Shown here in pieces: positions 14,017 through 41,031 of a stretch of DNA of 64,000 bases (within the stretch, counting starts at the first letter, position 1; each line of letters starts with the position of its first letter). The stretch comes from Tubulanus polymorphus. Lineage: Eukaryota; Animalia; Nemertea. The translations under genes and the position numbers were made by a program. The stretch lies in assembly GCF_964204645.1 (NCBI RefSeq), contig NC_134030.1:2646778-2710777 (forward strand), read 5' to 3'. Under the pieces are notes generated by a model. That model was not told where the DNA came from. It saw only the letters and a program-made list of their open reading frames with translations, and made no database searches.

Positions 14017-14055
14017 TATATTTAAGGGAAGTCTTTCAAAGTTTTCTCATTATTT

Positions 14056-15139
14056 TCACACAATACTGCCTGTTTCTATATCATCTGTAAAACCACTAGT
14101 AATACGTGGATATTTCACCTCGACCGGTTCAGATATTTCCGGACGTTGTTTCGCGCGTCGCCGCGAGCTTCCGTTTTCACTAACCCCCGATTCGTAGTGA
14201 ACGCTACCGTCGAATGATGAAATCACCGCAGTCATACCCTCCGCGCCGGTGAACTCTTCCGGTTGGATTTTATTCTCGAATCGTCGCGGACGGTGTACCG
14301 CGTCGTCGCTGTCGTGACCTCCATCTCCCGGCGAACGCTCCGACTCGTGTCGGCGATGATGATGTTTTTTCTTCTTGCGTCGATGTCGTTTCGGCGACGT
14401 CTGCTCAGGTTCCGTCGGAGCCAACGCGTTTAGAGGGGGTAACGGTAAAGCACGTTTAAACGGACTGTCGGCGAATTCATCCGGCGGTCGCAATATTAAA
14501 CCGTCCTTTACTGTTGGTGATACGGGTGGCAACGGTCTCGAAGGAAGAGCACGATCTTGTCTGAAATAGAGAGAACACTTCTATCAATCATTCATTCATT
14601 CATTCGTTGATCTCTGGTCAAGATTTCCGTGATTTGAAGTTTCTGCTAATTCTCCTGTCCCTGGAGACAGCAGAAATCTATCAAGAAGAGAATATTCTTC
14701 GGGCAAAGCATAATTGAAAAGTGCCCGAGTCATATTTGAAGAGGATGAAATGGTACTCGTACCGGAATCATGCTCAACTTTTGCTCAGAAAGTTTCTCAA
14801 CATTTCATATAGCATCAAAATACAAAAAAATACTACTTGTAAAACCATTATCAGAAAAAGTTGTTTTCAAGTAAAAGATATCGTCTATTGCGTGTATATC
14901 TAGGTTGTCGCAAAAGGAGAATGTCAAACAGGAAAGACTAGTTTTTCAAATAGGAGGAGGTGACTAGCTTGTGAAAGAGTTGACCCGAATATGAGTTGAG
15001 TGAACCACTCACCCGCTTAATTCCGATTTAGTTTTATGTTCGTCTTGAAATTGTTCAGGATTAACGGCGCCATCTGGATTATCACGTTCAGCAGGCGCGA
15101 CCAAATTCACGTCTTCGTTTTGTTTCGATGTATTTCTCT
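14056..15139 (-). CDS. Two terminal coding exons of a low-complexity cytoplasmic region (probable long tail of Ig-like receptor copy 1)
   Basis: Exon 15139-15013 (127 nt, enters in phase 1) and exon 14560-14056 (505 nt, TGA) join in frame: ...RNTSKQNEDV...ELSG-QDRALPSRPLPPVSPT...RALPLPP...PKRHRRKKKKHHHRRH...VKYPRI...ETGSIV*. The splice sites are canonical, and I found no start exon of their own. Confidence 0.75.
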
Positions 15140-18100
15140 CTGAAACGACAAATGTTAGAAATAAATATTCAGTCGGACTCTCATACTGCAGGAAATATTC
15201 AATGATCTTTAAATCAGCCATTGACCAGGCTAATTGACCATGTTCGTGGTCCGATTCACAAAAATGATAAACTCCTAAATTGTTGTTCTGCAGCCAGTCT
15301 AGCTGACCCTGTTCAGCAGCTTGACTGACGAACCCTGTTCAGCAGAGCTTGACTGACTAATCCTGTTCAGCAGCCTGACTGATAAACCCAAATAGACTCT
15401 TTCATCATAAATGTAAATTTCATTATATATATTTAATTGAAAAAACCATCCGTTTATTAACAACAAAACAAGAATACAGTAAGCAGTTCTTTAAGTGAAC
15501 AATTTCCTTTTTTAATAATTTTCAAATACTTATTATACCACTGGGTATGGACTTGTAAACAAAAAGTGGATGATGAAAAATCTCAACTTTATTAATGGTG
15601 ACAAATCGCGATCTTAATTTAAATCGTGTCTTTAGAGAATGACAATAAAAATGGATGAATTTAGATCAATCTCGAAGATATCATAATAGTTGGATATTTC
15701 ATTATCATCTTCATTGACAATCAGCTCATCAATCGTAATAACAATACATAATGACCGAATTTCAGGGGCCACTGATCCAGGGGACTCTTATAGTGCCATT
15801 TTCTATTTTTCAATGAACAAAAATTGTAAAATTTCAGTGATGTGGGAAGTGACAAGTTCAAGTTCCTGTTTTAAACAGCTGGAGTTTACAGTCTGAGGTC
15901 CTGTTACAAGTGGCAAAGTTTGTCAGCATAAAACAGCCGGATGTAGAGTTTGATAAGCCCCTCGGTGCGAAAATCATTCAATATTGCCTTTTTGAACATC
16001 AAAGTGCTCTTTTGGATTGTGACAAGTTTTTCAAAATCAGACCCTGGATCCTCCCCTGAATTTTCATTCATACCAATATGGATATTATTTTTCCCTTAGT
16101 TTATTCTATCTAAGAGCATGATTATTTCATTGAGATAAGAAAGCTCCTCTATTATGCACGGTCAACGTGATTCTACAATAATCATTATAGCATTGATTTA
16201 ATTATTTACACTAGGTGAATCCCGTTAACACCTCTTTTCAGCAATCTTGAATAACAATATAATCTGTGATTACGTATGGAAAATTTAACAAGTAAGAATT
16301 AAAACTGTCAATATTTAGCCACCTGACAAGTGCTGCCATCTGGCGTTTGATACAAAAACTATTCCATATGACTCAACTGCGCATTAGATGATTTATAATT
16401 GAGGCGTGTTCACATTTCTATTCTGAGTTGTTGTTACCAGGTGTGGTTATAATAGAACACATTATTTCAAAACAGCTACCACCACACACTAATACTATCG
16501 GCACTACTACATAGCAATTACTCTCATCTCATATAGAAATACTGTTATATTCTCTTGTTGTACATGACACAAAATTGGATAAGCTTACGAATGATATTAT
16601 AGAACGAACTAAGTTGTCTGAGACTGGTCTTAGTTCTAATCCGAGACAATGGAACTGGCCCTTGAATATGTGACTATACGGTATCACTCGTTTTATTCGG
16701 ATTTTCACATATTTTGGTCCCCTCTGGTTAATTTCTATTCAAACGAGGGCACAGACTTCATTTCATTCGTGAAAAATTTACCAGTCTCCGGTTCTACTGT
16801 ATAACATCCATATTACAGGTATTCAATCTGTAGCCCTTCAGACAATCATCCACGTAATGAACACACTATGAACACTACATTGCCTGTGTTGGAAATTGTA
16901 CAGATATTGTATCTAACATATGTAGTTCATTTTCATTTAGAAATGTCTCGGGTAAAGTTTTGAAAACATGTGGAGTGTGGACGATCAAAATTGGAAGACT
17001 GACGATTAAGGTGTTGAATGTATTGTGTAAGTGCAGGGTCCAGGCAGCAGATTGATACAACACGATATTGTAATTATTTGGACAAAAAAGCCATCAATAG
17101 TAGAATTAATGCTATTTTACACGCAGCACAAGTGGTAAACTGTTAAACTGATCCGGATTTAGTGAAATTGAAAGATATTTGTAAAAGTAAACCTCACTTT
17201 ACTTGGTCAAACTGCAACTGAAAAAAAATTGGTCCGAAAAATAAAATAGGAAATCAAAAAATGATTTTTTGTTTTTGTCCAAGTCTGGTGAAAGTCAGCA
17301 GCGAGTTGTTGACCAAGACTGAGTTTAGCAAGATTTACTTTGTAAGTAACTACATCATATATTACAAATTAGGTAAATAACAATATATTCATAACAAATT
17401 CTTCTAAAGAATATTTTGATACGGATTTTGTATAACATAACATGTAATTATATAAATCAGGAGGAGGTGGCAGGGAGAGGGGGTGGCAGGGAGAGGGGGT
17501 CACCTATTTCAATGGGATAGATACCGTAAAGATAAGATAGTTATAATTATATCGAATAACAATACAGCTAATAAAAATATTCACCATGCTGTTCACTTCT
17601 TGATTTGAATTTTATGTCAAATCAATGCACTGAATTTGAAAACTTTTTCATCTAAGAATTGGTCATGGTCATGCAGCCTTTTCATAGGACTAACCGAAAT
17701 TGCTAGACTATGGTATATCAGATTTTGTACTTAAATTTTGTCATTGCTTTTTTACAAAACCGTCGTAGACACAGTCTGTCTAATTTGTCATTTTTTTTAG
17801 AATATGTACAATCAAATACATAAACATGTACATTAACAAATATAACTCAAGAGAATGACTTTAATGGACACAGGACGGATTAAAGTCTTCATATGATCAC
17901 AAATCATTTCATCGGCATACAATTAATAGAATAGAATATTTCACGTGATATCCATGAAATACTTCTCCTATGAGACATATAGACTTGATCTATGAATAAT
18001 TCAAATCGGATAAAACTTGATTCTTTGTTAGTTAATTCAATCGGGTATAGTTTGAATAAGTTCCTGAAACGAGGAAGTTTGAACGTCAAAATTTTGCAAT

Positions 18101-18572
18101 AAATTCCCCTAACTGAATTCCTCTATTCAAACAAACAAAAAAACCAGTTATATTCTATATAACTGCGATAAAAACCGACAAAAATACAGTAGTTACACAT
18201 GACAACACAATGCTTTGAATAACAGTAGAAACTCTGTTTATCTCTGCCTTCTTGGGACTAATGAATTTTCTCCAGGGCACGGAGTAAATTCTGGGGTAGT
18301 CGGAGAGACATGAATGGAAAGTAGAAAGATTGGTTGTGTCAAGTGTAATAATAAAATTGATCATTATCAACAACAAGAACTATTAACCCTATCCATGTAA
18401 CATTACTAAAATTGTCTCTATTTTCAGTCCGAATTTGGATTTATAATTCAATTTCAAAGTGTAAGTCGTCATTTGGATAAGTCATCAACTAAATGCCCCA
18501 ACTAGACTCAAACCAATGTCACTCTATCCTGCTATTTTTATCCTGGTGCGAATTTTTAAAAATTTATTTATT

Positions 18573-21500
18573 TTAAATGGTTTGACCATTACGTGGGTCA
18601 GTTGACATCGGTACAGCGCCAACTTCACCTGAAATTTTGAAAAAAAGATAAAATTCTTCAGCAAAATTTCAACTTTTTCAGATAGAATTTAAGAATCAAT
18701 AAGCAGTCAATATTTACCCGGATTTTGGAAAGCTTGGTTCATGTTTCCATTTACTTTTGGACTGCTGTTGCAGTTGCTGTTGTTGTTGGGGTTATTGCAA
18801 TTGTTCATTTCTGTAATCAAGAAATTCTTTTTCTCGCAAAATGCTTATGAGTTCAACACTGAGTGGAACAAAGGAATCGACAATTTTAGGCACAAAATAA
18901 ACAACCATTTCAACATTTTATAATTTCCCTAGTGTCGCTTGAGCAGGAACGAGCAGCCATTAAATCCATGTCATAATCATAGATTCCTATAAATTCTACT
19001 ATCTATCCATTCTAAATAAATTCAATCTACTTTCGATGATTGAACAGAAATCTTTGATCAAGTGTGACTCTAGAAAAATGTCATTTTGTAGCCCGAATCT
19101 CATATTATTCATTAAAATCAAAGATGGCTGCTTGAAAACGAAATTGGTGCATCATGTGAGTGCTATGTGCAGTTTGCAATGGATAGAATAGAATTTGTAC
19201 TTACTCTTACAATAGCAGATTATTGATATCATGAGTCCAGAAATCACTATAATAATCACTATTACAATTACACTAACACAAGCAGGTACGTTACATTTAC
19301 ACCAACCATCATCGCATAGCTCAGTAATAGGTCCCGCTAAAAAAGAAATAAGATATTTAAATTCATGCTCATTTACATTCATCATTCCAAAATGATTGTT
19401 ATTCATTAGTGTAGGTATTTACTCTGCATTTTTTCATATTTATACAACTAATATTCATAACTTTTTGTGTGCGAAAGTTGACTTAACCCATTAGACGCCG
19501 CAACTTCATATGTATGATCCAGAATAACAAACTCTTAATTAGCCAATTGAATTTTCATATAAAGATTTAGTAGATGCAGTGTGAAAACTATTGAAAATGA
19601 TACATTACAACCATTGGTTATTTTGAAGATTTACTATCTATTGCTGTATCGATTTGGTCAATCATTGATCAAAACTTTGACCTTTGACCCCCTCAAACTA
19701 TAGATGGCGCTATAGTACAGCGGACGTTGGCGGACATTCTGAGGAGATACAAGTCGAATGTCGACGAATGTTCTGCGGTCCATTGGGTTAATAGATAAGC
19801 CTCCTCTCACCCCTTCCCAAAAAGAATTTGAGTGATACTTACTTGTAGGTTCTTCTGAAAATATATCAATTCAAAATGCATTAGAATCTGTTAAATACAG
19901 TAGAAACTGCTTCCAAGAGCGGGGCAGTTCAACTGGGATTATAAGATTCTCTAAAAGTATTTTTAGTATTTTGAGGTATTTGAGGATGTTTTATGAATTT
20001 CATTTTTTATCTGAAGTCATGGTTCCCACAGTTATATGAATTCAAAATTCCCAAGTATTTCATGGGTGATTTTTCAATGTTCCCAAATGGAAATGAACAT
20101 GTCTTATCGTCATGCTACAGTCAACATTTTAGCGGTGACTGGTTGACATAGGTGATTTTCAAGGGAAATCGCTGAAGAAAGTTGCCTTTGGCAAATGCAA
20201 TATGTGAAATGTAATGAATTTTCCAAATAATTCCCTGATTTGAGGAAAATTTTTCAAATTCCAAATATTTTGTAACTGGGTATGTTTATTTCAAAATTCC
20301 AAAGTTTTTACCCAATTTCCCTGTTCTGTGGGAACCATGTGAAGTTGACTATTCATTTCTATAACGTTGTCAACAAACAACCCAGACTGGCGAGAGTGGA
20401 ATGCTATTGAATGAATCGATTGAAATAGCTCTGTTGAATGCTGAATAGCTGTATGGGAGTTCCATGAATATGCGGGGAAAACCCCGGTGATCAATAGACG
20501 TAATTGAAAGCTCTAATCAAAACAACTGACAATATCATACTCATATATGAAATGCACGTAAATGATTTTTAAACTGATAAAATGAAAGGAAAGTTTCAAT
20601 TGAAATTACTCTAGCCAAGAGATTTCACTGATTGTAGAATAACAGCAACAAAGCAAGTTTTACTGAATTAATTGAAGAAATTATATCGAGAGTTTAACTC
20701 TTTTGAGAAACTTGACCTTGATTCGCTATTGGGTGAGATATTTACATTCTCAATATTACTGAATAGGAGGCAGTTTCACGAGGCTAAACATTTACCTTCA
20801 GGTTGACATTTCACCAGTTTGTTCAGATTATTGACATCATATGCACAGCAACGCACATTCTTAATTTCTGTTGCGTTCTCTAAAACCAGGACACTTTTAC
20901 TGCGATATTTTGGCCACTTCGGTATAAGTGGACAACTATCATTATTCACAGGGTCGTTAGTGATACTGACTGGATCTTTCTATGAAATAATGAAACAATT
21001 TTTGAATAAACAAAAATGCTAATTGCAGAATTAATTGCTACGAATGAAACCTGAATTCAGAGAATTACTTCAATAAGTCGCCTCTAATTTCTATTCCCAA
21101 ATCTATTTGCTAAGAATAAGTCATCATCAACTTAATGATCGTCAAAACTAAATGAACTACGAGGACTTAAAAGTGACCGAGTTTAACTGTAATTAAAAAA
21201 ATTATACTGTTTTTCAGCAATGATGTAGTTTGTGAAAATTTCCCTATTTGATGTAGGCCTAAAAAACTTACTGGTTCTGTTCCATTAACCGTCCATTTAT
21301 ATGAATATTGTGAGAATGTACAGGCTCCGGTTCCTTCATCAACAGAATCTCCCGCTAAACAAGTGAATTCTGTCTTATCATCAGATGATGTCATGTTTAT
21401 CAGCTGTGGTACGTCTGAAAAATTTTGGTAATTTTGGCAATCCTTTAATAATACAGTGTAAAAATCAATATTTTAGTTCAGCAGCTGGTCTTCGTCTGTG

Positions 21501-24006
21501 ATGGTCCTTTGAAGACTTATATCTGGTATGTACCAACAAAACTGACAGAACTAGGCCACCTGGACGTCCTCTTATGTTAAGTTGAAAGACTTGAGTCTCT
21601 TATGTCAGTTGCTAAAGCAGAGTATGTCACAGGCAGTCACAAGTCTCAGGCAGACACAAGTCACTGACAGTCAGTCGGTTGGCATTTCCTGAAAAATAGG
21701 TGTGACAGGCAAAGAGTGAAAGCCAGGTGCAGTGTTTTCAATAAGAAATTAACAAGCCAGGTCCCTTTGAAAAACAGGAGGGTCCCATAATATGTCACCG
21801 TTCCGGAAATGAAAGCTGGTTTGAAAAAACAGGCGGGTCCTTTACAAACAACAGACGGGTCTGGGACCTGGAACCTGGCTCTTATTGAAAACATTGAGGT
21901 GTAGGTCAGGGGCCAGTTGCTCAAAAGTTGGTTAAAGATAATTGTAACAATGAAATTTCAATTGTCACCATATCAACTATCCACTGGTTAACTCTAACCA
22001 ACTTTTCAGCAACCGGCCCCAGGATTTCCATGTTTATAGAATAAAACTAGAAAAAGAAATACTTTCATCAAATTGTTTTTTTTTTGTTTATCTGGCTCTG
22101 TTTTCTCATGTAGAATTAGTAGTATTTCTCAAGTGATAGAGCCTGGTGCGATGCAGAGGGGGTACTTTGCAGGAAATATGTCAGGTGTTTTGAGCCCCAC
22201 TTCAATAGATAAGGTGTCACTAACACACTGCAAAGAATCACCATGGGCTATAAAACAAAGGGCCATGAAAACACGGCGAAAGATCAGAGGATATTTTTCC
22301 TCAGTGTTTTCGAAATTTAGCACAAATTTGAAATGCATTGACTTATGTGCTATAAATTTTCAACGAGGTGCAAAACGTACTTTGTTTTTAGTCCATAGAA
22401 TGACTGATGATAATCTGTTTTAGTAGTACAGTCATTAACCTAACTGGTGTCATGCAATTAATTCGCCATCTATTAGGCCTATCAGAGTTTAGAAACAGTA
22501 CGTTTTGACCATACTCCCTCAGCAGGGATTTGAACCTGATGGCACCGAAACCCTGCCACACTAGACCGGGTGCGCAGCTTAGATGATGACATTATCAGCC
22601 AATCAGAAATCTTGTTTTATTTTAGCGCGCGTTTTTTCCATTTATAGTTCTTCCATGTAATTTGTCTCAGAGATTATACAACGAAAGCAATCTGATTGGT
22701 GCCGCAAGTTTTTGTGCAGCAAACTCGCGCACCTGGTCCAGTGGGGCAGAGGTTCGTGCTGTGGCCGAGTGTAGAGGTGCCATCAGGTTTGAATCCCTGC
22801 CGGTGTATCATGGCTTTTGGCAGGAAAGTGATGGGAACTTTCAGCTATTCCAGTATGTCTTTGGCAGAAGTTAATATGGAGAAAACTAAATTTTGACAGA
22901 TACTCACCGGTAAGAGTGTATTGTAAACTGTCTAATACATTTCCTACGATACATTTAAAAACAGGTGTCCCGTAATTATACCAGCGATCATCAAACATTT
23001 TAAACGTCATCGTTAAATTCGCCTCGGTACCGCTCCCCTCCGGATTGTCTCCCGTACACTTTATATCGAACGTGTTGAAGTCGATAAATAAAGTTGTATT
23101 CTTGAAAGCTCTCGCTGGGTATTTTTTACAGTTTGTATTGAATGTAACGTATGAATTACGAGGAGCAGTGTCCATAGGTCCTTCAGGTTCAACCCTGAAC
23201 ACCGATGAAACACCAGCCGGATCTGGAAAGTCTCTTATCGTACACGTCATATTATACCAGTCTGTAGTTAGCATATCAGTGTTCCTATTACTAGTCAGTG
23301 TTATACTGAGAGCCATCACACCTGAAATATAATATATCTATCTATTTAAACACGGTATAAACAGTTTAATTCATCAATTCACCAGAATCAGTGAACACAA
23401 GGCGCTGTACGACCTAGAGAGGAGTGTTCATCCTCGCTTGCCAGGGTTCGATTGCCGCCCGCCGAAGCTCACACCAAAACAAACCCTGGCTTAAAACCCT
23501 TCATCGGTTTATCACATCGCCTGAGATTGCCGCTAAAAGTGGCTATCAGTCTATGTATCAAGCAAATCATGCGGTAGATTCGCTACACATCTGTTTGGCT
23601 AGATATATATAGATTGATGGGGGCTGAGCAGCTGTCAGTTTGGCATAGAAATCTTAGGCAATTTAATATACCAATGAAATTGAAAGGCAAGCGAGGGTGG
23701 GTGAGGAGAGCTGTGGTCGGTATGCCTGCTGTTTAGGTGTCCCTAATGGTTATGTACCTAACCTTAACACTTAACACTAGCACCACCCAGTGGATAAGGT
23801 GACCCAAACTGCAGACCCCAGGGGACCCCAGTACGTAATAACAAATAAATTAGAACAGAATTAAAGAAAGAATGAATGAAAGACTGCTAACTTGATGAAT
23901 TCGGGTAGAAGAAAACCAGCATCACCAGCAGAGCAGCAGCAACAGCCGCTGCATTAGCAGCTACCGCTTTTTTCATCGCCCACGGTTTTACAGATCGAAT
24001 AATCAT
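18573..24006 (-). CDS. Ig-like single-pass membrane receptor, copy 1 (382 aa short isoform)
   Basis: Exons: 24006-23892 (signal peptide MIIRSVKPWAMKKAVAANAAAVAAALLVMLVFFYPNSS), 23321-22908 (V-like domain, NMTC...VFKC), 21414-21272 and 20979-20796 (C-like domain, FTC..YKWTVNG..SKSVLVL..VRC), 19854-19843 (12-nt microexon), 19336-19205 (CDDGWCKC + TM), 18810-18718, 18628-18573 (TAA). All phases are consistent. The Ig assignment is inferred from Cys/Trp spacing and phase-1 domain borders. Confidence 0.85.
19487..19787. mobile_element. piggyBac-like MITE (second family)
   Basis: ttaa|cccatt ... ttggg|ttaa, with a TTAA duplication. Confidence 0.7.
20018..20339. mobile_element. MITE present only in copy 1
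   Basis: TIR catggttcccacag / ctgtgggaaccatg, TSD tgaagt. The empty site tttatctgaagttgact is seen at 28792, 37524 and 39585. Confidence 0.9.
21909..22019. mobile_element. MITE (GGGCCAGTTGCTCAAAAG family)
   Basis: cag|gggccagttgctcaaaagttggtta ... taaccaacttttcagcaaccggccc|cag; a related copy lies at ~2229-2345. Confidence 0.75.
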
Positions 24007-24050
24007 TTACACAAGACGAGTGTTTAATCCTTTAATTCAAACTGGGAGTC

Positions 24051-24092
24051 TCATAATCGCGTCGTTACGGGGTGATGACGTGATAGGGTGTA
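24051..24092 (-). promoter_or_regulatory. Conserved proximal upstream block with a CRE/ATF-like TGATGACGTGAT motif
   Basis: The block cgcgtcgttacggggtgatgacgtgatagggtgtag lies upstream of all three receptor ATGs (also 31161-31202 and 41401-41442). Its function is inferred. Confidence 0.4.
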
Positions 24093-25240
24093 GTTGTAGT
24101 ATGGAAAATGGAAAACCCAGCAAATCGCTTCCTGGTCGACTGATGCGACTTCTATCGATAAATCGTTCTACTATAATCAATACAAATTCATATGTTCATT
24201 GCGCAAAGAAAATGTCATCCTCGCTTGCCAGGGCTGTCGTCAGGTTTCAACGAAACTCTGTATGTTACCCGGGTACCAAGAAACATCGTATCAAGTAGTA
24301 GATAGATCACGAGATTTATATCACTACAGGGGCGCGTCTAGGGTCTGAATCAGGAAGGGGTACACCCGATTTTCAGCATTCACGTCGGTTCGATTTCTAG
24401 GGGTCGGAAATGAAGACTACTCACTCCGGACTAGGGGTCTAAATGCACTGAGGAAATATTCAATGATCAATCAGCCGGTGACCAGGCTAAATGACCCTGT
24501 TTTGAGATCCATTTCACAAAAACGATAAACTCCTTAATTAATCTATGAGGTTCGGCAATGCCTGACTGATGACCCGGTTCAGCAACCTGCCTGATTGACC
24601 CTGTTCAGCAGCCTGACTGATAAACCCAAATAGACTCGGTCATTAATGTAAATCTCCATTAAATATATTTCACAGGTTTATTAACAGCATTACAAGAATA
24701 AGCAGATAATTTAGAAGCGAATGAATTATTTCTTTTCGCCCCTTTTTTACATATTTCTCCCGAAAACGTTTGCTATAATCATATATTACTCATAAGAAAA
24801 TGAGATTTGTACTGTTTTGTACTGTTTTTGCTTCTATGGAATTTGAATTATTTAGACTCTCTACCTAAGATCTATTTTTCAAATACTTATTACGGGTTCT
24901 TGTAAACAAAAAGTAGATGATTGAAAAAATATCAACATATTATAGAACACATTATTTTAAAACAGCACACTACTACTACACAGCAACAGTACTCAATCTC
25001 ATATAGAAATATCATTACTCTCATCTGTACACAGCCCGATATCCAAAAGTGATAATCTTACAAATGATATTAACGAATTAAGTGGTCGGAGACTGGTGTT
25101 AGATCTAGAATTTTCACTAATTTCGGACTAAAATTCCAGTCCTCTCTAGGTCATTTCTATTCAAATGTTAGCACGGACTTCATTTAACTTGTAAAAAATT
25201 TACCAGTCTCCGTGGATCCAAATTAAGCGAGTTCTACTGG

Positions 25241-26475: not shown

Positions 26476-26699
26476 GGCTAAAAAAAATTGATACCTTGTT
26501 TCTCCGCTCTGCTGAGCTTAAATGTTGACCCGGCCGGCCGGCCGCCTATCTACCCTATACATTACTTTTTTAAAAATCGTGATCAATTTTACCATAACAG
26601 ACCCGGCCGCTATAGAAATGAGCTGTTTATAAATTTTATCATATTTTACAAAAATGACCCGGCCGCTGCGGAGAAACAAGGTATCATTTTTATTTAGCC
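26476..26699. mobile_element. Tourist/Harbinger-like MITE nested in an older MITE (26425-26899)
   Basis: taa|ggctaaa...gataccttgtttctccgc ... gcggagaaacaaggtatca...tttagcc|taa. The empty site is at 35431-35441 in unit 3. Confidence 0.9.
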
Positions 26700-27924
26700 T
26701 AATGTTAGGCTAAAATCTCTGATAGAGGGCCTATACGGCATATTGTTTGGCCAAACATAAGATGATATGGTACCGATTACGTAGTATTGTTCGCCCGCTT
26801 TGTCTTGAGTACATTCGGTTCAAGAAAAAGATTGAAATATTTTTTTTGGTAGCTGAGCAGGGTCACGACCCCTGAACCCCCTCTCTGGATCCGCGCCTGT
26901 AAAGATAAGATGGTTTTAATAATATCAAAAGACAATACAGCTAATCAAAATACACCATGCTGTTTACTTCTTGATTTGAATATGATGTGAAATGTACTGA
27001 ATTAGAAGAATTGGTCATGCAACTGAAATTGCTAGACTATGGTATATCAGATTTTGTACTTAAATTTTGTCATTGCTTTTTTTACAAAACCGCCGTAGAC
27101 AGAGTCTGTTTAATTTGTCAATAGAAAATTTCACGTGATATCCATGAAATACATGAAACATAGAGACTTGATCTATAAATAATTCAAATCGGATAAAACT
27201 TGATTCTTTGTTAATTCATAGTATAGGTATTCATGGTATAGTTTGAATAAATTCCTGAAACGAGGAAGTTTGAACGTCAAAATTTTGTAATGAATTCCCA
27301 TAATACTGAACTAAAGTTATATTTTATCCCTCACTGCGATAAAACTCTACATAAATACAGTAGTTGCACATGACAACACAGCTTTGAATAACAGTAGAAA
27401 CTCTGCTTTCGTGGGACTAATTAATTTTCTCCAGGGCAGGAAGTAAATTCTGGGGTAGTCGGAGAGACATGAATGGAAAGTAGAAAGATTTCAAACATCA
27501 AGTGTTGGAAATCGGCTGTGTCAAGTGTAATAGTAAACTTGATCATTATCAATAACAAGAACTATTAACCCTATCCATGTAACATTACTAAAATCGTCTC
27601 TATTTTGAGTCCGAATTTGGATTTATAATTCAATTTCAAAGTGTAAGTCGTCATTTGGATAAGTCATCAACTTTATGGTCCAAACTAGACTTAGGCCAAT
27701 TTCACTATATTCTGATATTTTATTCCTGGTCCAAATTTTAAAGATTTATCCATCTTAAACGCTTTGACCATTACTTGGGTCAGTTGACATCGGTACAGCG
27801 CCAACTTCACCTGAAATTATAAAAAAAAGATAATATTCTTCAGAAAAATCTTCTATTTTTTCAGAAAGAATTTAAGAGAATTAGAAGTCAATATTTACCC
27901 GGATTTTGGAAGGCTTGGTTCATG

Positions 27925-30900
27925 TTACCATTTTCTTTTGGACCGCAGTTGCTGCAGGATATTGCGGTTGTTCATTTCTGTAATCAAGAAATTCTTTTTC
28001 TCGCAAAATGCTTACAGTTAACACTGAGTGGAACAAAGGAATCGACAATTTTAGGCACAAATTAAACAACCATTTCAACATTTTATAATTTCCCTAGTGT
28101 CGCTTGAGCAGGAACGAGCAGCCATTAAATCCATGTCATAATCATAGATTCCTATAAATTCTACTATCTATCCATTCTAAATAAATTCAATCTACTTTCG
28201 ATGATTGAACAGAAATCTTTGATCAAGTGTGACTCTAGAAAAATGTCATTTTGTAGCCCGAGTCTCACATTATTTGTTAGAATCCAAGATGGCTGCTTGA
28301 ATACGATATTGAGTGCAATGTGCTGTCTGCAATTGATAGAATAGAATTAGTACTTACTCTTATAATAGCAGGTCATTACAATTATTATGAGTCCAGACAT
28401 CACTATGATTATCACTATTACAATTACACTCACACAAGCAGCTAGGTTACATTTACACCAACCATCATCACATGGAGGAGGAGCAGGTCCCGCTAAAAAT
28501 GAAATAAAATATTCAAATTCACGCTCATTTATATTCATCAGTCGTACGACTTGTAGGTTCTTCCGAAAATATATCAATTCAAAATGCATTAGAATCTGTT
28601 AAATACAGTAGAAACTGTTTCAAAGAGCGGGGCAGTTCAGCTGGGACTGAAAGATTCAAATCAAATAGTTTTCTACTTGTCTAAAAGTGTTCACTGCTTT
28701 AATACAAACATCGAATAAACTCAACCACGTCTGGGTACAACATATTTTTAGTATTTGAAGGTATTTGAGAACGTTTTATGAATTTCCTTTTTTATCTGAA
28801 GTTGACTATTCATTTCTATAACGTTGTCAACATAAACAACCCAGACTGGCGAGAGTGGAATGCTGTTGAATGCTGAATAGCTGTATGGGAGCTCCATCTA
28901 TAAGTTTGGACGGGAAAAACCCCGGTGATTAATACGGGTAATTGAATTAATTGAAGAAATTATAACGATTTAAGAGTTTTTTGAGAAACTTGACCTCGAT
29001 TTTCAATTGGGTGAAATATTTACATTCTCAATATTACTGAATAAGTGTCAGTATATTGCAGTTTAACATTTACCTGCATATTTCACCAGTTTGTTCGGAT
29101 TATTGACATCATACGCATAGCAACGCACATTCTCAATTTCGGTTGCTTCCTTTAAAACCAGGACACTTTTACTGCGATATTTCAGCCAATTCGGTATAAC
29201 TGGACAACCATCATTATTCGCAGGGTCGTTAGTGAGACTGACTGGATCTTTCTATGAAATAATAAAGAAATTATTGAATAAGAAAATGCTAATTGCAGAA
29301 TTAATGACAATGAGTGAAACCTGAATTCAGAGAATTACTACAATAAGTCGCCTCTAATTTCTATTCCCGAATCTATTTGCTAAGAATAAGACATCACCAA
29401 CTTAATGATCGTCAAAACTAAATGAACTACGAGGACTTAAAAGTGACCGAGTTTAACTGTAATTCAAAAAATTATACTGTTTTCAGCAATGATGTAGTTT
29501 GTGAAAATTTCCCTATTTGATGTAGGCCTTCTTAAAACTTACTGGTTCTGTTCCATCAACCGTCCATTTATATGAATATTGTGAGAATGTACAGGCTCCG
29601 GTTCCTTCATCAACAGAATCTCCCGCTAAACAAGTGAATGTTTTCTTATCATCAGATGATGTCATGTTTATCCACTGTGGTACGTCTGAAGAAAAACAGT
29701 TCATACACATTTCTAAATTTTGAAGGTAAAATTCAATGTTATTCCATTAAACAACTTAATTCCCATAATAGAACGATGACCACACTCAACGTGGTGAACG
29801 GATAATAAGATATAATCCCACTATTTACAGATTAAAAGAATTTAAAAACTTAATTCCCAGCTTCAAACAAATAAGGCCCAATAAAAAATAAATGGTTTTT
29901 TAATGTAAATTGCTTAAATTTTTTACCTTGATGACGCACACCGCAATTCAACCACATTCGCAGTGAAAGGATTTACATAGAGAAAACTAAATTTTGACTA
30001 ATACTCACCAGTAAGAGTGTATTGTAAACTGTCGAATACATTTCCTACGATACATTTAAAAATAGGTGTCCCCTGATTATACCAGCGATCATCAAACATT
30101 TTAAACGTCATCGTTAAATTCGCCTCGGTACCGCTCCCCTCCGGATCGTCTCCCGTACACTTTATATCGAACGTGCTGAAGTCGATAAATAAAGTTGTTT
30201 TCTTGAAAGCTCTCTTTGGGTATTTTCTACAGTTTGTATTGAATGTAACGTATGAATTACGAGGAGCAGTGTCCATAGGTCCTTCAGGTTCAACCCTGAA
30301 CACCGATGAAACACCAGCCGGATTTGGAAAATCTCTAATCGTACACGTCATATTATACCAGTCTGTAGTTAGCATATCAGTTTTGGTATTACTAGTCAGT
30401 GTTATATTGAGAGCCATCACACCTGAAATATAATATATGTATCTATTTAAACACGGTATAAACAGTTAAATTCATCAATTCACAAGAATCAGTGAACACG
30501 AGGCGCTGTAACACCTAGAGAGGAGGAGTGTTCATCATCGCTTGCCAGGGTTCGATTGCCGCCCGCCGAAGCTCACACCAAAACAAACCCTGGCTTAAAA
30601 CCCTTCATCGGTTTATCACATCGCCTGAGATTGCCGCTAAAAGTGGCTATCAGTCTATGTATCAAGCAAATCATGCGGTAGATTCGCTACACATCTGTTT
30701 AGCTAGATATATATAGATTGGTGGGGGCTGAGCAGCTGTCAGTTTGGCATAGAAACCTTAGGCAATTTAATATACCAATGAAATTGAAAGGCAAGCGAGG
30801 GTGGGTGAGGAGAGCTGTAGTCGGTATGTCTGCTGTTTAGGTGTCCCTAATGGTTATGTACCTAACCTTAACACTATTCTTTAATAACACTAGCACCACC

Positions 30901-31116
30901 CAGTGGATAAGGTGACCCAAACTGCAGACCCCAGGGGACCCCAGTACGTAATAACAAATAAATTAGAACAGAATTAAAGAAAGAATGAATGAAAGAATGC
31001 TAACCTGATGAATTCGGGTAGAAGAAAACCAGAATCACCAGAGCAGCAGCAACAGCCGCTGCATTAGCAGCTGCCGCTTTTTTCATCGCCCACGGTTTTA
31101 CAGAACGAATAATCAT
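27925..31116 (-). CDS. Ig-like single-pass membrane receptor, copy 2 (344 aa, short basic tail)
   Basis: Exons 31116-31005, 30422-30009, 29685-29543, 29251-29074, 28492-28358, 27977-27925 (tail KKMNNRNILQQLRSKRKW*). The ectodomain frame and splice sites are intact. Confidence 0.82.
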
Positions 31117-31210
31117 TTACACAAGACGAGTGTTTAATCCTTTAATTCAAACTGGGAGTCTCATAATCGCGTCGTTACGGGGTGATGACGTGATAGGGTG
31201 TAGTTGTAGT

Positions 31211-33538
31211 CACAGGGGTTTGGCGATGGGCTAGACTGGTTGCCTGTCCCATTCAATATGGGACAGGTTTTGCCCGTACGCCATCTTCCGCGGATGTTAC
31301 GGATCCAAACAGATTTCAGTATTTCATCACGTGAACAATGTAACATGGCCGCCTACACTGTGTCTCGATTTACGTTCCATGGACCTCTTTAAAGTCATTT
31401 TTTATACCAATGAAGAAAGAAATTCCATTAAAACTGCCAGGTAACGCTTCTGCAGGCACTTGTTTAGCGTGTGGTACCGAAAATATCGGTATGCAATTCA
31501 GGATGGCTGCGTGACAGCGCCGTCAAAACCTACAGGTCGTCAATCAGCAATTTGGACTGTGTGTGTGTATGGAGGAAACAATAATACATACAATACTACA
31601 ACAATACATCCAATACTACTTGACATACTGAACCTTGCACCAGAGGCTACTTGTTTGTTCACTCGAGGCGATTGATTGATTACCGATTGTTCTTAATGTG
31701 ACATTGGATATCAGCGGTTGATCCAGTGAAAATAATGACATCAACAAGGTAACTTCACCTACTTCCTTACTTCTTCATAAAATAAAAATATGAACATTGA
31801 ATATGAGTGCTATTCCACGAACACTATATTGATTATCTATTGTAGATTATTGTGAGCGTTTTAGTGATGATTTTGTGAGTCACAACTCGTAGGATGTTTT
31901 AAGAAATTGAAGTAATGCATATCAAATTAGCTCAACATGAAAAGAATAGATTGCAATGCATCAAGGTAAGTTTGAAAAATGGATTCTGAACCATTAATTG
32001 TAAAGTCAATCCAGGTTTAATTGTAAGTAAGATATGTATTTTAATTTCAGAATGATAACATCATGCAGTAATCAAAGAGAATAAAGAATCAGTACTAGCT
32101 GTCATGAAATGAGATTCCAAATAACAGGCGGTGAAACTCCTTGATTCTGATAAACTCATCATCATCAGTTACATCAGCAAGCGCCGCTGCGCCAAGATGT
32201 TGTGTACTGTATTTCTCCACTGCTCACGATCTGATAAACTGATGAGGTTTAAAGAGCTGGATTCTGTGAATAACTGTACTAGCGAGCCTTCAATTTGAAT
32301 TGTGATTGGATTATCTGTCTGGTCGAGACATGGTCTTTATGATTCTAAAGACACTATCATTCAAATCGGGGATAGCAGGATCGTCCCCATTTGTCGATGA
32401 AAAAAAAACTACTGTTTTATGTCATGAAATACGTAGTGACATTGCTTATTCTCTTGTCAATTGCTTATTCTCTTGTCAGGGGCTGAACAAGATATTGTAC
32501 CAGAAGTGAACAATAAATATTTAATTCAGTGAAAAAGAATTGGTCGTGATGAATTTTATAATCTATTTCTAGCAAAGTCAACATTGACATTGTGTGGTCC
32601 ATGAGGAGAGAGGATATTGCGAATTTCCAGTGTGATCTGAGTAACTTGTCTTCACCAAAAGTCTCTTAATTTGACTGTGCCAACTAGCTGTCTGTATCAG
32701 GAAATCAGTAGGCTGAGGTGGATCCAAATATCTGATCTCATAAAGCGCTAAGGAGTTCAACAATAGTAAACTTTATTCAGATACTAAATATAGTCAACTG
32801 TATTAAAACATCAATTCACTAAATACATACATCTCAGAAAGGATGTCCCCTGTTCCTTCAATGTTCCGTATTCAGTGACGGTCGCGGCAGAGTTCACCTC
32901 GCATTAGATTTCGATCCTTGTTAGTTTGTATTCCGAGTACCAGGTAAATTATCATTGGATTTATCTGATGCTAACAGCAATTAATGTCTTTCCGTCCATT
33001 GTAAAGGGCAATTTTGATATCGCTCGAAGCTAAGCAAATTCGAAGAGACGCCATCTTAACCAGGAAGTAACTTGCTACTTTACATGTTTGACCTTATTTG
33101 ACATGCGTCAAAAATGCATCCTCGCTTGCCAGGGGTCCGGTATCACTCCCGAACTCGCTTCCACCAGCCCCCTGGCCTCACGAAGCACGATTTCAATACT
33201 GGGGCTGTTGCGCATGACGTCATATATCGATTTGCGAAATACTTCCTTGTTCGGTAAAACGTTCGCTGATTGGTCCATTTAACGGAAAAACCAACAGAAG
33301 TCTACTGTCGTTTGTTACGAGCGCTGTGATTGGTACGACCAGATTCTGGTCGGCTAGTAACGACTCCAACGACTCGTGAGGTCAAGAAGGGGTTCGACGA
33401 ACAACTTTAGCGTAGTGGGTTCGAATCCCTTGACGGGTGAAGATGCAAAAATGTAAAATGGAGGATGGGCACAACCGGTCTCTAATTGAAGATAGAGACC
33501 GGTAACCAGTCTACCAAGCCCATCGCCAAACCCCTGTG
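31211..33538. mobile_element. 2.3-kb non-autonomous TIR DNA transposon (P- or hAT-like)
   Basis: 22-bp TIR cacaggggtttggcgatgggct and 8-bp TSD gttgtagt (31203-31210 / 33539-33546). The empty site is at 24093-24100 in unit 1. There is no intact transposase ORF. Confidence 0.93.
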
Positions 33539-36500
33539 GTTGTAGTATGGAAAATGGAAAACCCAGCAAATCACTTCCTGGTCGACTGATGCGACCTCTA
33601 TCGATAAATCGTTCTACTATAATCAATACAAATTCATTATTCATTGCGCAAAGAAAAGGTCATCCTCGCTTGCCAGGGCTGTCGTCGGGTTTCAACGAAA
33701 CTCTGTATGTTACCCGGGTACCATGAAACATCGTATCAAGTAGTGGATGGATCACGAGATTTGTATTACTACAGGGGCGCGTCTAGGGTCTGAATCAGGA
33801 AGGGGCACACCCATCTGGATTTTCAGCAGGCGCGACCAAATTCACGTCGGTTCGATTTCTAGTTTAGGGGTCGGAAATGAAGACTACTCACTCCGGACTA
33901 GGGGTCTAACCTGCAGGAAATATTTAATGATCAATCAGCCGGTGACCAGGCTAAATGACCTTGTTTTGAGATCCATTTCAAAAATAAACTCCTAAATTAA
34001 TCTATATGAGGTTGTTCAGCAATGCCTGACTGATGACCCGGTTCAGTAACCTGCCTGATTGACCCTGTTCAGCAGCCTGACTGATAAACCCAAATAGACT
34101 CGGTCATTAATGTAAATCTCCATTAAATATATTTCACAGGTTTATTAACAGCATTACAAGAATAAGCAGATAATTTTGAAGCGAATGAATTATTTCTTTT
34201 CGCCCCTTTTTTACATATTTCTCCCGAAAACGTTTGCTATAATATATATTACTCAAAAGAAAATGAGATTTGTACTGTTTTGTACTGTTTTTGTTTCTAT
34301 GGAATTTGAATTATTTAGACTCTCTACCTCAGATCTATTTTTCAAATACTTATTACGGGTTCTTGTTAACAAAAAGTAGATGATGAAAAATATCAACTTA
34401 TGATAGAACACATTATTTTAAAACAGCACACTCCAACTACACAGCAACATTACTCAATCTCATATAGAAATATCATTACTCTCATCTGTACACAGCCCGA
34501 TATCCAAAAGTGATAATCTTAGGAATGATATATAGAACGAATTAAGTGGTCGGAGACTGGTGTTAGATCTAGACAACGGAACCGGTCCAACAATTTTTGA
34601 TAATACAGAATAACTCATTTGGATCGGTTTTATTCGGATTTTCACTAATTTCGGACTAAAATTCCAGTCCTCTCTGTCATTTCTATTCAAATGTTAGCAC
34701 GGACTTCATTAAACTTGTAAAAAAGTCTCCGGGGATCCAAATTAAGCGAGTTCTACTGGATAACATATGTATTGTAGGTTTTCAATCTGCAGCCCTTGAG
34801 ACAATCATTTTTGGAAAATGTCTCTGGTGAAGTTCTGACCACATGTTAGTGATGATGATGATGATGATGATCAGTTTTTGAAAGTGTGCTGACGAAATGT
34901 CTAATGTCTGGTGTTTGTAGTTTATTTTCAATTAAAAATGTCTCGGGTAAAGTTTTGAAAACATGTGGAGTGCGGACGATCAAAATTGGAAGACTGACGA
35001 TTAAGGTGTTGAATGTATTGTGTAAGTGCAGGGTCCAGGCAGCAGATTGATACAACACGATATTGTAATTATTTTGACAAACAAAAAGCCAGCAATAGTA
35101 AGATTAATGCTATTTTACACGCAGCACAAGTGGTTAACTGTGAAAATGACCCAGATTTAGTGAAATTGAAAAATATTTGTAAAAATGATATTTGAAGCTG
35201 ATATGATCTACTACACCGGTCATTCGTATACGCCTAACACCGGTTATGGATTTATTATTTTTACTTGTCTGTTGGTGCAATTATATCAATCATATTACAA
35301 TTAGATATTTAGAAATCAATGACAAAAATAAACTAAATTTTATACATAAACATGATACCTCCTACAATCGGATAGGTACCATAAAGCAGGCTCGGATCTA
35401 GGATTTTTTCCAGGAGGGGGTTCATAAAGGATGTTAATGTTAGGCTAAAATCTCTGATAGAGGGCCTATACGGCATATTGTTTGGCCAAACATAAGATGA
35501 TATGGTACCGATTACGTAGTATTGTTCGCCCGCTTTGTCTTGAGTACATTCGGTTCAAGAAAAAGATTAAAATATTTTTTTTGGTAGCTGAGCAGGGTCA
35601 CGACCCCTGAACCCCCTCTCTGGATCCGCGCCTGTAAAGATAAGATGGTTTTAATAATATCAAAAGACAATAAAAAAATACACCATGCTGTTTACTTCTT
35701 GATTTGAATATGATGTGAAATGTACTGAATTAGAAGAATTGGTCATGGTCATGCAACTGAAATTGCTAGACTATGGTATATCAGATTTTGTACTTAAATT
35801 TTGTCATTGCTTTTTTTACAAAACCGCCGTAGACAGAGTCTGTTTAATTTGTCAATAGAAAATTTCACGTGATATCCATGAAATACATGAGACATAGAGA
35901 CTTGGTCTATAAATAATTCAAATCGGATAAAACTTGATTCTTTGTTAATTCAATCGGGTATAGTTTGAATAAGTTCCTGAAACGAGGAAGTTTGAACGTC
36001 AAAATTTGGTAATAAATTCCCATAATACTGAACAAAGACCAGTTATATTTTATCCCTCACTGCGATAAAACTCTACATAAATACAGTAGTTGCACATGAC
36101 AACACAGCTTTGAATAACAGTAGAAACTCTGCTTTCGTGGGACTAATTAATTTTCTCCAGGGCAGGAAGTAAATTCTGGGGTAGTCGGAGAGACATGAAT
36201 GGAAAGTAGAAAGATTTCAAACATCAAGTGTTGGAAATCGGCTGTGTCAAGTGTAATAGTAAACTTGATCATTATCAATAACAAGAACTATTAACCCTAT
36301 CCATGTAACATTACTAAAATCGTCTCTATTTTGAGTCCGAATTTGGATTTATAATTCAATTTCAAAGTGTAAGTCGTCATTTGGATAAGTCATCAACTTT
36401 ATGGTCCAAACTAGACTTAGGCCAATTTCACTATATTCTGATATTTTTATCCTGGTCCAAATTTCAAAGATTTATCTATCTTAAACGCTTTGACCATTAC

Positions 36501-36651
36501 TTGGGTCAGTTGACATCGGTACAGCGCCAACTTCACCTGAAATTATTAAAAAAAAGATAATATTCTTCAGAAAAATCTTCTATTTCTTCAGAAAGAATTT
36601 AAGAGAATTAGAAGTCAATATTTACCCGGATTTCGGAAGGCTTGGTTTATG

Positions 36652-39600
36652 TTACCATTTTCTTTTGGACCGCAGTTGCTGCAGGATATTGCGGTTGTTC
36701 ATTTCTGTAATCAAGAAATTCTTTTTCTCGCAAAATGCTTACAGTTAACACTGAGTGGAACAAAGGAATCGACAATTTTAGGCACAAATTAAACAACCAT
36801 TTCAACATTTTATAATTTCCCTAGTGTCGCTTGAGCAGGAACGAGCAGCCATTAAATCCATGTCATAATCATAGATTCCTATAAATTCTACTATCTATCC
36901 ATTCTAAATAAATTCAATCTACTTTCGATGATTGAACAGAAATCTTTGATCAAGTGTGACTCTAGAAAAATGTCATTTTGTAGCCCGAGTCTCACATTAT
37001 TTGTTAAAATCCAAGATGGCTGCTTGAATACGATATTGAGTGCAATGTGCTGTCTGCAAAGGATAGAATAGAATTAGTACTTACTCTTACAATAGCAGGT
37101 CATTACAATTATTATGAGTCCAGACATCACTATGATTATCACTATTACAATTACAATAACACAAGCAGCTAGGTTACATTTACACCAACCATCATCACAT
37201 GGAGGAGGAGCAGGTCCCGCTAAAAATGAAATAAAATATTCAAATTCACGCTCATTTATATTCATCAGTCGTACGACTTGTAGGTTCTTCCGAAAATATA
37301 TCAATTCAAAATGCATTAGAATCTGTTAAATACAGTAGAAACTGTTTCAAAGAGCGGGGCAGTTCAGCTGGGACTGAAAGATTCAAATCAAATAGTTTTC
37401 TACTTAAATGTCTAAAAGTGTTCAGTGCTCAAATACAAACATCGAATAAACTCAACCACGTCTGGGTACAACATATTTTTAGTATTTTAAGGTATTTGAG
37501 GATGTTCTATGAATTTCCTTTTTTATCTGAAGTTGACTTTTCATTTCTATTACGTTGTCAACAATAACAACCCAGACTGGCGAGTGGAATGCTGTTGAAA
37601 TAGCGAATTGATTGAAATAGCTCTATTGATCGCTGAATAGTTGTATGGGAGTTCCATGTATAGTTACGCGGGGAAAACCCCGGTGATCAATAGACGTAAT
37701 TGAAAGCTCTAATCAAAACAACTGACAATATCATACTCATATATGAAATGCACGTAAATGATTTTTAAACTGATAAAATGAAAGGAAAGGTTCAATTGAA
37801 ATTACTCTAGCCAAGAGATTTCACTGATTGTAGAATAACAGCAACAAAGCTAGTTTTACTGAATTAATTGAAGAAATTATATCGATTTAAGAGTTTAACT
37901 TTTTTGAGAAACTTGACCTCGATTCTCAATTGGGTGAAATATTTACTCAATATTACTGAATAGGGCCCAGTTTATAGAGGCTAGATATTTACCTGCACAT
38001 TTCACCAGTTTGTTCAGATTATTGACATCATACGCACAGCAACGCATATTCTTAATTTCCGCTGCTTCCTTTAAAACCAGGACACTTTTACTGCGATATT
38101 TTGGCCAATGCGGTATAACTGGACAACCATCATTATTCGCAGGGTCGTTAGTGATACTGACTGGATCTTTCTATGAAATAATAAAACAATTATTGAATAA
38201 GAAAATGCTAATTGCAGAATTAATGACAATGAGTGAAACCTGAATTCAGAGCACCACTTTAATAAGTCGCCTCTAATTTCTATTCCCGATTCTGTTTGCT
38301 AAGAATAAGTCGTCATTTGAATAACTCATCAACTTAATAAACGTCGAAACTAAAAAAACTACGAGGACTTAAAAGTGACCGAGTTTAACTGTAATTCTAA
38401 AAATATACTGTTTTTCAGCAATGATGTAGATTTTTTTTAAATTTCCCTATTTGATGTAGGCCTACTTAAAACTTACTGGTTCTGTTCCATCAACCGTCCA
38501 TTTATATGAATATTGTGAGAATGTACAGGCTCCGGTTCCTTCGTCAACAGAATCTCCCGCTAAACAAGTGAATTCTGTCTTATCATCAGATGATGTCATG
38601 TTTATCCACTGTGGTACGTCTGAAGAAAAACACAGTTCAAACACCTTTCTAAATTTTGAAGGTAAAATTCAATGTTATTCTATTAAACAACTTAATTCCC
38701 ATAATAGAACGATGACCACACTCAACGTGGTGAACGGATAATAAGATATAATCCCACTATTTACAGATTAAAAGAATTTAAAAACTTAATTCCCAGCTTC
38801 AAACAAATAAGGCCGTGAAATTCGCAGTGAAAGGATTTACATAGAGAAAATAAAATTTGGACTACTCACCGGTAAGAGTGTATTGTAAACTGTCTAATAC
38901 ATTTCCTACGATACATTTAAAAACAGGTGTCCCGTAATTATACCAGCGATCATCAAACATTTTAAACGTCATCGTTAAATTCGCCTCGGTACCGCTCCCC
39001 TCCGGATCGTCTCCCGTACACTTTATATCGAACGTGCTGAAGTCGATAAATAAAGTTGTTTTCTTGAAAGCTCTCTTTGGGTATTTTCTACAGTTTGTAT
39101 TGAATGTAACGTATGAATTACGAGGAGCAGTGTCCATAGGTCCTTCAGGTTCAACCCTGAACACCGATGTAACACCAGCCGGATCTGGAAAGTCTCTTAT
39201 CGTACACGTCATATTATACCAGTCTGTAGTTAGCATATCAGTATTGGTATTATTAGTCAGTGTTATACTGAGAGCCATCACACCTGAAATATAATACATA
39301 CACGGTTTAAACCGAGTGGCCATCAGTCTAGTATGGTGGCTGATTTACGGAGTTCTTCTGAAAATATATCAATTCAAAATTCATGAGAATCAGTTAAATA
39401 CAGTAGAAACTGCTTCAAGAGCGGGGCAGTTCAACTGGGACTGAAAGATTCAAATCAAATAGTTTCTACTTGTCTAAAAGTGTTCAGTGCTCAAATACAA
39501 ACATCGAATAAACTCAACCACGTCTGGGTACAACATATTTTTAGTATTTGAAGGTATTTGAGGACGTTTTATGAATTTCCTTTTTTATCTGAAGTTGACT

Positions 39601-41031
39601 ATTCATTTCTATTACGTTGTCAACAAACAACCCAGACTGGCGAGAGTGGAATGCTATTGAAATAGCGAATTGATTGAAATAGCTCTATTGATCGCTGAAA
39701 AGTTGTATGGGAGTTCCATGTATAGTTACGCGGGGAAAACCCCGGTGATCAATAGACGTAATTGAAAGCTCTAATCAAAACAACTGACAATATCATACTC
39801 ATATATGAAATGCACGTAAATGATTTTTAAACTGATAAAATGAAAGGAAAGGTTCAATTGAAATTACTCTAGCTTCGTTAACGCTTCGTTAAAACCAGTT
39901 TTTCGTTTTAACGCATCGTTAAAACGAAATTTTGGTTTTAACGCTACGTTAAAACCAGTTTTTCGTTTTCTCTCTGGCATCCTTCCGTCTAAGGCGCAGC
40001 GCTGGAACATCTTCTATATCTAGTGTGACTAAGGAGTCGAAAAGCAGTCGCGGTTGCATTGACAGCATATGACGGCGGAGGGAGTTCTGGTTCTGCTGCT
40101 CTAGCTTTCCTACGGATGCGCTTGGTTGTGACAGCCTCTCTGACAGATCTGGTATGTTCGGCATCACGAACACCCGCTGCCACAGCTCTAGCCCATACCA
40201 TCACGATCATCAGCAAGGCTTTTCCAAGCGCTAGGGTTAACGCATCGTTAAAAGCAACTTTTCGTTTAACGCCACGTTAAAATCAGATTTTCGTTTTAAC
40301 GTGGCGTTAAAAACGAAAAAGACTACGCTAAAAGCAAATTTTTGCGTGGTTTCGTTTTAAACGCCACGTTGAAACCAACTTTGATAGAGTTGCGATAAAA
40401 AGAAAGTACCACGTTAAAACGAGAAACTGGTTTTAACGCCACGTTAAAATGAAAAATTGGTTTTAACGATGCCTTTAAACGAAAAGTTGGTTTGTATAAG
40501 GATGCGTTAAAACGAAAAACTAGTCTTAACGTGGCGTTAAAATTAAAAATGAAGAATGAGAAAAAAATTGGTGTGAACCGAGTGTCATTTTATTTCGCTT
40601 TTTTCAATGTGGTCCGAATCAGCCACAGTATATATATTAAGCCAATCATGCGGTAGATTCGCTACACATCTGTTTGGCTAGATATATAGCAGCTACCTGT
40701 CCGGCATAAAAATCTTAAACAATTTAATACACCAATGAAAGGCAAGCGAGGGAGGGTGAGGAGGAGAGCTGTGGCTGTGGAACTAACAGCACTAATATAC
40801 TCAGCTCAGATTACGACCACCGATTCACACAAACTCTTCAGCCAGTACGTGTAATAACAAATAAATTAGAACAGAATAAGAGAAAATTAATGAAAAACCA
40901 TTAATGAGAGACCGCTTACCTGATGAATTCGGGTAGAAAACCAGCATCATCAGCAGAGCAGCAGCAACAGCCGCTGCATTAGCAGCTGCCGTTTTTTTCA
41001 TCGCCCACGGTTTTACAGATCGAATAATCAT
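36652..41031 (-). CDS. Ig-like single-pass membrane receptor, copy 3 (344 aa, short basic tail)
   Basis: Exons 41031-40920, 39283-38870, 38619-38477, 38170-37993, 37219-37085, 36704-36652, with a possible 9-nt microexon at 39357-39349. Confidence 0.82.
39874..40545. repeat. ~29-bp periodic palindromic repeat array (TTTTAACGnnnCGTTAAAA) enclosing a unique ~270-bp core
   Basis: 3 units at 39877-39958, ~11 units at 40236-40545, and a GC-richer core at 39970-40235; found only in copy 3 intron 1. Confidence 0.8.

Follow-up and report, generated by a model that had tools for sequence, protein, structure and literature searches.

We describe here a cluster of three putative receptor genes in the ribbon worm Tubulanus polymorphus, located within a gap-free stretch of 64,000 nucleotides (nt; C6:2,646,778-2,710,777 of the 268-Mb genome; hereafter referred to as the window). 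In our assessment, the cluster is probably a young tandem expansion of one two-domain receptor gene, in which one copy would signal and two would be non-signalling. Self-BLAST of the window revealed three units of 9-10 kb each, and the copies on the minus strand were named according to their start positions as A (41001), B (31086) and C (23976). Each comprises a signal-peptide exon, a 414-nt exon, two exons encoding domain 2, a transmembrane (TM) exon and the cytoplasmic exons E6 and E7, all with canonical splice sites, and the predicted proteins consist of 334 (A), 334 (B) and 372 (C) amino acids. A prior reading of the letters by a model (hereafter the sequence-only reading) had described three cassettes of signal peptide, two immunoglobulin (Ig)-like domains and TM segment, each with its own start exon; these cassettes are real, and the Ig nature of their domains is probable. 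The 12 substitutions it had counted in the 138-codon exon 2 are confirmed as residue differences between B and C. Over 244 ectodomain residues, identity is 92% for A/B, 92% for A/C and 88% for B/C. Sequence searches were conducted with single exons and with proteins returned by the databases; no paper on the locus was found in the literature. The features of the cluster are as follows:

40920..41001, minus: copy A exon 1, ATG and signal peptide, 82 nt
38870..39283, minus: copy A exon 2, domain 1 (probably Ig-like), 414 nt, phase 1-1
37993..38619, minus: copy A exons 3 (38619-38477) and 4 (38170-37993), domain 2 (probably Ig-like)
37085..37219, minus: copy A exon 5, TM helix, zero charged residues
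36481..36704, minus: copy A E6 (36704-36626, 79 nt, in-frame stop, 18-residue tail) and E7 (from 36536)
33812..33860, minus: decayed E8 remnant behind A, acceptor gone, with deletions; similarity to C stops here
31211..33538, no strand assigned: hAT-like non-autonomous element, 2.3 kb, at the A-B junction
31005..31086, minus: copy B exon 1, ATG and signal peptide
30009..30422, minus: copy B exon 2, domain 1
29074..29685, minus: copy B exons 3 (29685-29543) and 4 (29251-29074), domain 2; two cysteines of A and C replaced by tyrosine
28358..28492, minus: copy B exon 5, TM helix, zero charged residues
27755..27977, minus: copy B E6 (27977-27899, in-frame stop, 18-residue tail) and E7 (from 27810)
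24367..24398, minus: decayed E8 remnant behind B
23892..23976, minus: copy C exon 1, ATG and signal peptide, 85 nt
22908..23321, minus: copy C exon 2, domain 1
20796..21414, minus: copy C exons 3 (21414-21272) and 4 (20979-20796), domain 2
19843..19854, minus: predicted 12-nt stalk micro-exon, splice sites intact in C only, both mutated in A and B
19205..19336, minus: copy C exon 5 (E5), TM helix; E5-E6 splice present in two RNA-like runs
18718..18810, minus: copy C E6, 93 nt, Asn-rich, frame kept
15440..18628, minus: copy C E7, 17 codons, stop at 18573 (50-residue tail), long 3' untranslated region (UTR), AATAAA at 16105, 15593 and 15458
15013..15139, minus: E8, 127 nt, entered in phase 1 and left in phase 2; donor from RNA, acceptor predicted
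14056..14560, minus: E9, final coding exon of the putative long tail, single copy in the genome

The copies differ most clearly in their tails. E6 is 14 nt shorter in A and B (79 nt) than in C (93 nt), so A and B reach a stop after 18 residues, whereas C reads into the stop of E7 and obtains a tail of 50 residues. The frameshift is common to A and B, and the downstream E8 is merely a decayed remnant in both. The A/B stop is 26 nt away from the final junction, so these transcripts should escape nonsense-mediated decay (NMD). E6 (27899-27977) is plausible in two frames, the A/B frame resembling the third frame of C and exiting in phase 2, which is the acceptor phase of E9; the polarity of the frameshift is therefore uncertain. 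No tyrosine occurs in the 18-residue tails past the TM edge, and D, E, K, R and H are absent from the TM segments of all three copies. The sequence-only reading was thus right that the tails differ, but a single downstream set of cytoplasmic exons serving all three cassettes is not supported: E6-E7 are present in each copy, and A and B stop in their own E6. In the public annotation, XP_074652060.1 (LOC141906676) is identical to the copy B model from the second Met onwards, and its tail is exactly the predicted short tail. This RefSeq model lacks the signal peptide of exon 1, an omission that our model corrects; the searches returned no separate protein for A or C.

Expression was assessed in four sequencing runs aligned to positions 13900-19899 of the window, an interval that holds no ectodomain exons. 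Two of these runs, X2 and X3, are of unrecorded kind and were treated as RNA because spliced joints are present; the RNA evidence derives from contigs, which leave out rare forms, and the joints given here are those among the joints listed. C-type and A/B-type transcripts are both expressed: the depth of the E5-E6 junction was 392 (C-type) and 512 (A/B-type) in X2, and 14 and 20, respectively, in X3. Expression, the absence of which would have spoken against the sequence-only reading, is supported by spliced junctions of both types in two samples. Other letters listed within 17094-18593 were mostly in the A/B state. In X3, RNA is continuous from 16964 to 15485, and, judging by depth, the long UTR of E7 is where most C transcripts probably end. 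A 67-bp unit within this UTR (16921-16987) is a member of a highly repeated tandem family located elsewhere in the genome, covered about 900x per strand in DNA reads.

The signalling capacity of C would reside in E8-E9, which encode about 210 residues. A GT-AG intron from 15012 to 14561 in a contig of X2 joins both exons and places the donor of E8 at 15013; the best acceptor, in phase 1, is at 15139, preceded by a good polypyrimidine tract and a CAG at 15140 in the phase required by the donors of C. The E5, E6 and E7-internal donors of C are each in frame with E8, and the resulting proteins would have 533-576 residues. E9 is under coding constraint, as seven of the eight differences between X2 and the reference fall on third codon positions (P=0.003) and six of the eight are silent. 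E9 contains two RxLPxxP motifs, a number reached in 1 of 10,000 shuffles, a C-terminal SIV resembling a class I PDZ end (2% of shuffles) and a basic/His stretch; an ITAM (immunoreceptor tyrosine-based activation motif) was absent from the long tail. No second copy of E9 was found in the genome, and no homologue was detected among 5.8 billion proteins within the length range searched. Two other origins of E9 were considered and rejected. A TSP1/EGF-type gene upstream, near 60 kb, already has a last exon, at about 56.3-56.1 kb (judged by eye), and the other upstream gene is on the plus strand and starts head-to-head near 41.9 kb.

The two-domain ectodomain is likely to be Ig-like, and the proteins would be type I membrane proteins. 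With strands assigned by eye, domain 2 of all copies shows the order Cys, YKW and later Cys; domain 1 has both cysteines, but carries Phe where two paralogues have Trp. Two cysteines of domain 2 in A and C, a likely pair, are both Tyr in B. This joint loss in B, noticed post hoc, hints at selection on a folded protein. As to the fold proposed in the sequence-only reading, the structural neighbours of the domain 1 model include V-, I- and C-set domains, the model being too poor for strand counts; Foldseek returned zero matches at E<=0.001 for either of the two models. No significant match was obtained in sequence searches of Pfam and PDB, the sole Pfam Ig hit being Ig_3 with E=0.046 for a paralogue.

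The history of the cluster can be read from the extent of similarity between the copies. The similarity of A and B to C ends in the decayed E8, indicating that the duplication ended in E8 and that E9 was never carried along. B differs from C by 1-2.5% in the promoter and intron 1; its difference from A is about 1-4% from intron 2 onwards and in E5-E7. Its affinity switches from C to A across exon 2, and it is most distinct from E3 to intron 4. Being part C-like and part A-like, B looks like the product of an unequal crossover of A and C. The A-B and B-C junctions have the same sequence except for a 2.3-kb element in A-B, which has perfect terminal inverted repeats of 22 nt and an 8-bp target duplication (GTTGTAGT); its empty site is kept at the B-C junction near 24095, and about 40 matches to its end occur in the genome. 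Ratios of nonsynonymous to synonymous substitution rates (dN/dS) between copies range from 0.9 to 1.8 in Nei-Gojobori counts, none significantly different from 1, and positive selection was accordingly not accepted. Ectodomain evolution may be relaxed or diversifying, the changes being too few to decide between the two. Copy A has two rearrangements of its own: a 520-bp duplicate (96% identical) of its intron 4 (37284-37811) in intron 1 just upstream of exon 2 (39352-39873), and an insertion of about 310 bp, lacking in B and C, in its promoter/5' UTR (41075-41385), flanked by a short direct repeat.

Based on these patterns, we propose the following multistep scenario, in which (i) a C-like ancestral gene would have been duplicated from the promoter to a breakpoint in E8, yielding a new copy without the long-tail exons; (ii) a net loss of 14 nt in E6, if the frameshift seen in A and B has this polarity, would have created the basic 18-residue tail; and (iii) an unequal crossover between A and C would have generated B, which resembles C from the promoter through intron 1 and A from intron 2 onwards, with changes of its own in the central ectodomain. 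C would produce an isoform with the 50-residue tail, ending in E7 and representing the main form in the runs treated as RNA, and a minor long-tail isoform by splicing into E8-E9. The long tail may recruit SH3 proteins via the two RxLPxxP motifs, a PDZ scaffold via SIV and perhaps an SH2 phosphatase via VKYPRI. A and B, driven by their own promoters, would be surface proteins nearly identical to C in the ectodomain and devoid of signalling motifs, and may bind, adhere or compete as decoys. An undescribed small Ig superfamily-like family would thus have given rise to non-signalling receptor copies by partial duplication and unequal crossover. Among possible functions, immune or host-microbe recognition is slightly favoured over a neural or adhesion role.

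Several observations weigh against this scenario. The structure models of the Ig fold are of low confidence (pLDDT, the predicted local distance difference test, about 42), and the direction of the E6 frameshift is read without an outgroup. VKYPRI, the one site in E9 that fits the consensus of an ITIM (immunoreceptor tyrosine-based inhibitory motif), is weak, since 6% of shuffles match. Among the joints listed, none from any copy enters the E8 acceptor, and the X2 contig is unspliced from 15748 to 15013, with an in-frame ATG near 15221 in that RNA.

There is a modest chance that A and B are neutral duplicates, expressed but drifting towards pseudogenes, with C as the sole functional gene. Values of dN/dS of about 1 are the expectation under relaxed selection, and the frameshifted tail, the lost micro-exon and the decayed E8 of A and B fit such a drift. 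However, every ectodomain and TM exon of A and B is still open, the likely cysteine pair of B was lost jointly, and A/B-type transcripts are as abundant as C-type transcripts, with a stop placed where NMD should be evaded. We regard it as unlikely that E8-E9 encode a separate small protein of about 237 residues starting from the ATG in the 3' UTR of C. The X2 contig, the sole contig with the E8-E9 splice, favours such a protein, being unspliced up to 15748 and holding that ATG in frame; however, the acceptor signals at 15140 are in phase with the donors of C, the motifs suit a receptor tail, and the continuous RNA of X3 fits a UTR or read-through.

It is also rather improbable that copy B is an assembly artefact, in which the assembly placed two haplotypes of an A-C pair in tandem, the transposon between them being heterozygous. 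Such a mis-join would agree with the low divergence of B from C (promoter, intron 1) and from A (exon 5 to E7, 1-2%), and with the transposon at one junction and the empty site at the other. In raw DNA reads of a different animal (run X7), depth was about 9-11 over the single-copy E9 and 15-18 in the shared bins of 18500-19100, where about a third to 60% of reads carried A/B-type letters. Depth and mixed letters together indicate that at least two loci are real, so the caveat of tandemly assembled haplotypes is answered to this extent, two and three loci being indistinguishable there. From intron 3 to intron 4, however, B differs by 6-10% from both A and C, whereas contigs of other individuals differ from the reference by about 0-1.4% in the 3' region of C; moreover, the window has no gap, and a mis-join would require an overlap across sequence that differs by about 7-9%.

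Among known systems, vertebrate paired receptors were invoked in the sequence-only reading; they comprise KIR, LILR, Siglec and CEACAM, among others (as defined in PMC2832619). The likeness is partial: the genes are clustered, with near-identical ectodomains (88-92%), the recombination lies in or beside the putative ligand-binding exon, and a putative long tail with a weak ITIM-consensus match would occur beside short-tailed copies. In contrast to paired receptors, the short-tailed copies carry no positive TM residue and no ITAM, hence no activating partner is present, and the cluster is not a classical activating/inhibitory pair. SIRP-alpha together with SIRP-gamma, a receptor plus non-signalling copies, has a layout closer to that of the present cluster.

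The second comparison, with the allorecognition locus of Hydractinia, concerns 41 Alr loci over at least 11.8 Mb with a V-I-I-Fn3-like layout, of which the highly polymorphic Alr1 and Alr2 control allorecognition (10.1101/2022.03.04.482883). Both systems comprise clustered single-pass proteins with Ig-like domains (probable in Tubulanus) missed by Pfam, varied tails, some with an ITIM in Alr and one with a weak consensus match here, and recent duplication with exon shuffling. We nevertheless consider it very doubtful that the Tubulanus cluster is an Alr-like locus with polymorphic ectodomains, like-to-like binding and a self signal relayed by the long tail. Such a locus would be in line with the dN/dS range, with the distinctness of B from E3 to intron 4 between homogenised flanks, and with the graft rejection reported in the nemertean Lineus (PMC2248247). 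The latter keeps the recognition idea alive but has no bearing on this locus. Against it, there are only three copies, at 88-92% identity, and two distant paralogues, with two domains and no ITAM; no dN/dS differs from 1, and two protein searches revealed no similarity to Alr. T. polymorphus is a solitary animal, which also speaks against an Alr-like role. We likewise give little credence to the broader idea of a nemertean-specific family in which one two-domain ectodomain is combined with interchangeable outputs (an SH3/ITIM/PDZ tail, an SH2-like tail or none) and diversified by unequal crossover under selection for self/non-self recognition. To our knowledge, no genes for nemertean graft rejection are known, and none were found in the literature. 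If the recognition reading is true, and particularly if the ectodomains are polymorphic and bind like to like, the three copies would be candidate genes for this long-described response of ribbon worms.

In clustered protocadherins, tandem ectodomain units with separate promoters lie upstream of a unique 3' exon pair. An analogous locus, with each of the three cassettes spliced to a shared E8-E9 tail, is extremely improbable: E8-E9 are single-copy and downstream of all three cassettes, whose TM exons end in phase 1 as that of C does, in frame with E8, but unlike protocadherin units each copy is a complete gene of several exons, including E6, E7 and a stop of its own and followed by a homologous 3' region. 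The A/B transcripts employ the E5-E6 junction of these copies, no joint from A or B to the unique exons is among those listed, and a partial duplication accounts for the single tail. The variable cassettes joined to one constant tail, as envisaged in the sequence-only reading, are therefore not supported.

Searches for relatives agree with a lineage-specific family. At least five genome loci match the domain profiles, namely the three copies, C6:2,238,500 and C10:630,500, so that two distant paralogues were found in the genome; within the length and sensitivity limits of the protein searches, there were no relatives in other species. Both paralogues share about 20-29% identity and the ectodomain motifs, and in both the Trp of domain 2 is followed by a phase-0 intron. 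LOC141911924 (C10:626350-631981) is a single-copy gene encoding 523 residues with the same ectodomain (pairwise E=1e-6), a TM helix and an SH2-like C-terminus, for which the Pfam SH2_1 match (E=0.02) is below the cut-off. A receptor carrying its own SH2 domain would be unusual. In the C6 paralogue (C6:2238521-2274200), both domains are clear, and the next 25 kb or so yielded no TM exon. TM-like exons occur in this region at about 2,266,130 and 2,272,473, the second with a serpin exon (Pfam E=4e-34) within 1 kb, which suggests a membrane-anchored protein with a serpin following the TM segment. Protein P0002, considered as a further relative, was rejected as a repeat-rich, unrelated sequence.

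The cluster sits between two plus-strand genes. The gene on one side, with a Pfam DUF1744 match, is that of DNA polymerase epsilon; the coiled-coil gene on the other side, starting near 41.9 kb, may be CCDC191-like, and the promoter of copy A is arranged head-to-head with it. At 56130-60125, the end of a minus-strand gene encodes a match to a THSD7A/B C-terminal domain (Pfam PF23308, E=3e-7), with a TM exon near 59400 and the last exon near 56300. Two adjoining minisatellite arrays with units of about 86 bp and 92 bp (51291-52976) lie inside the coiled-coil gene, and further arrays are present at 2976-3362, 5450-5851 and 11660-12084.

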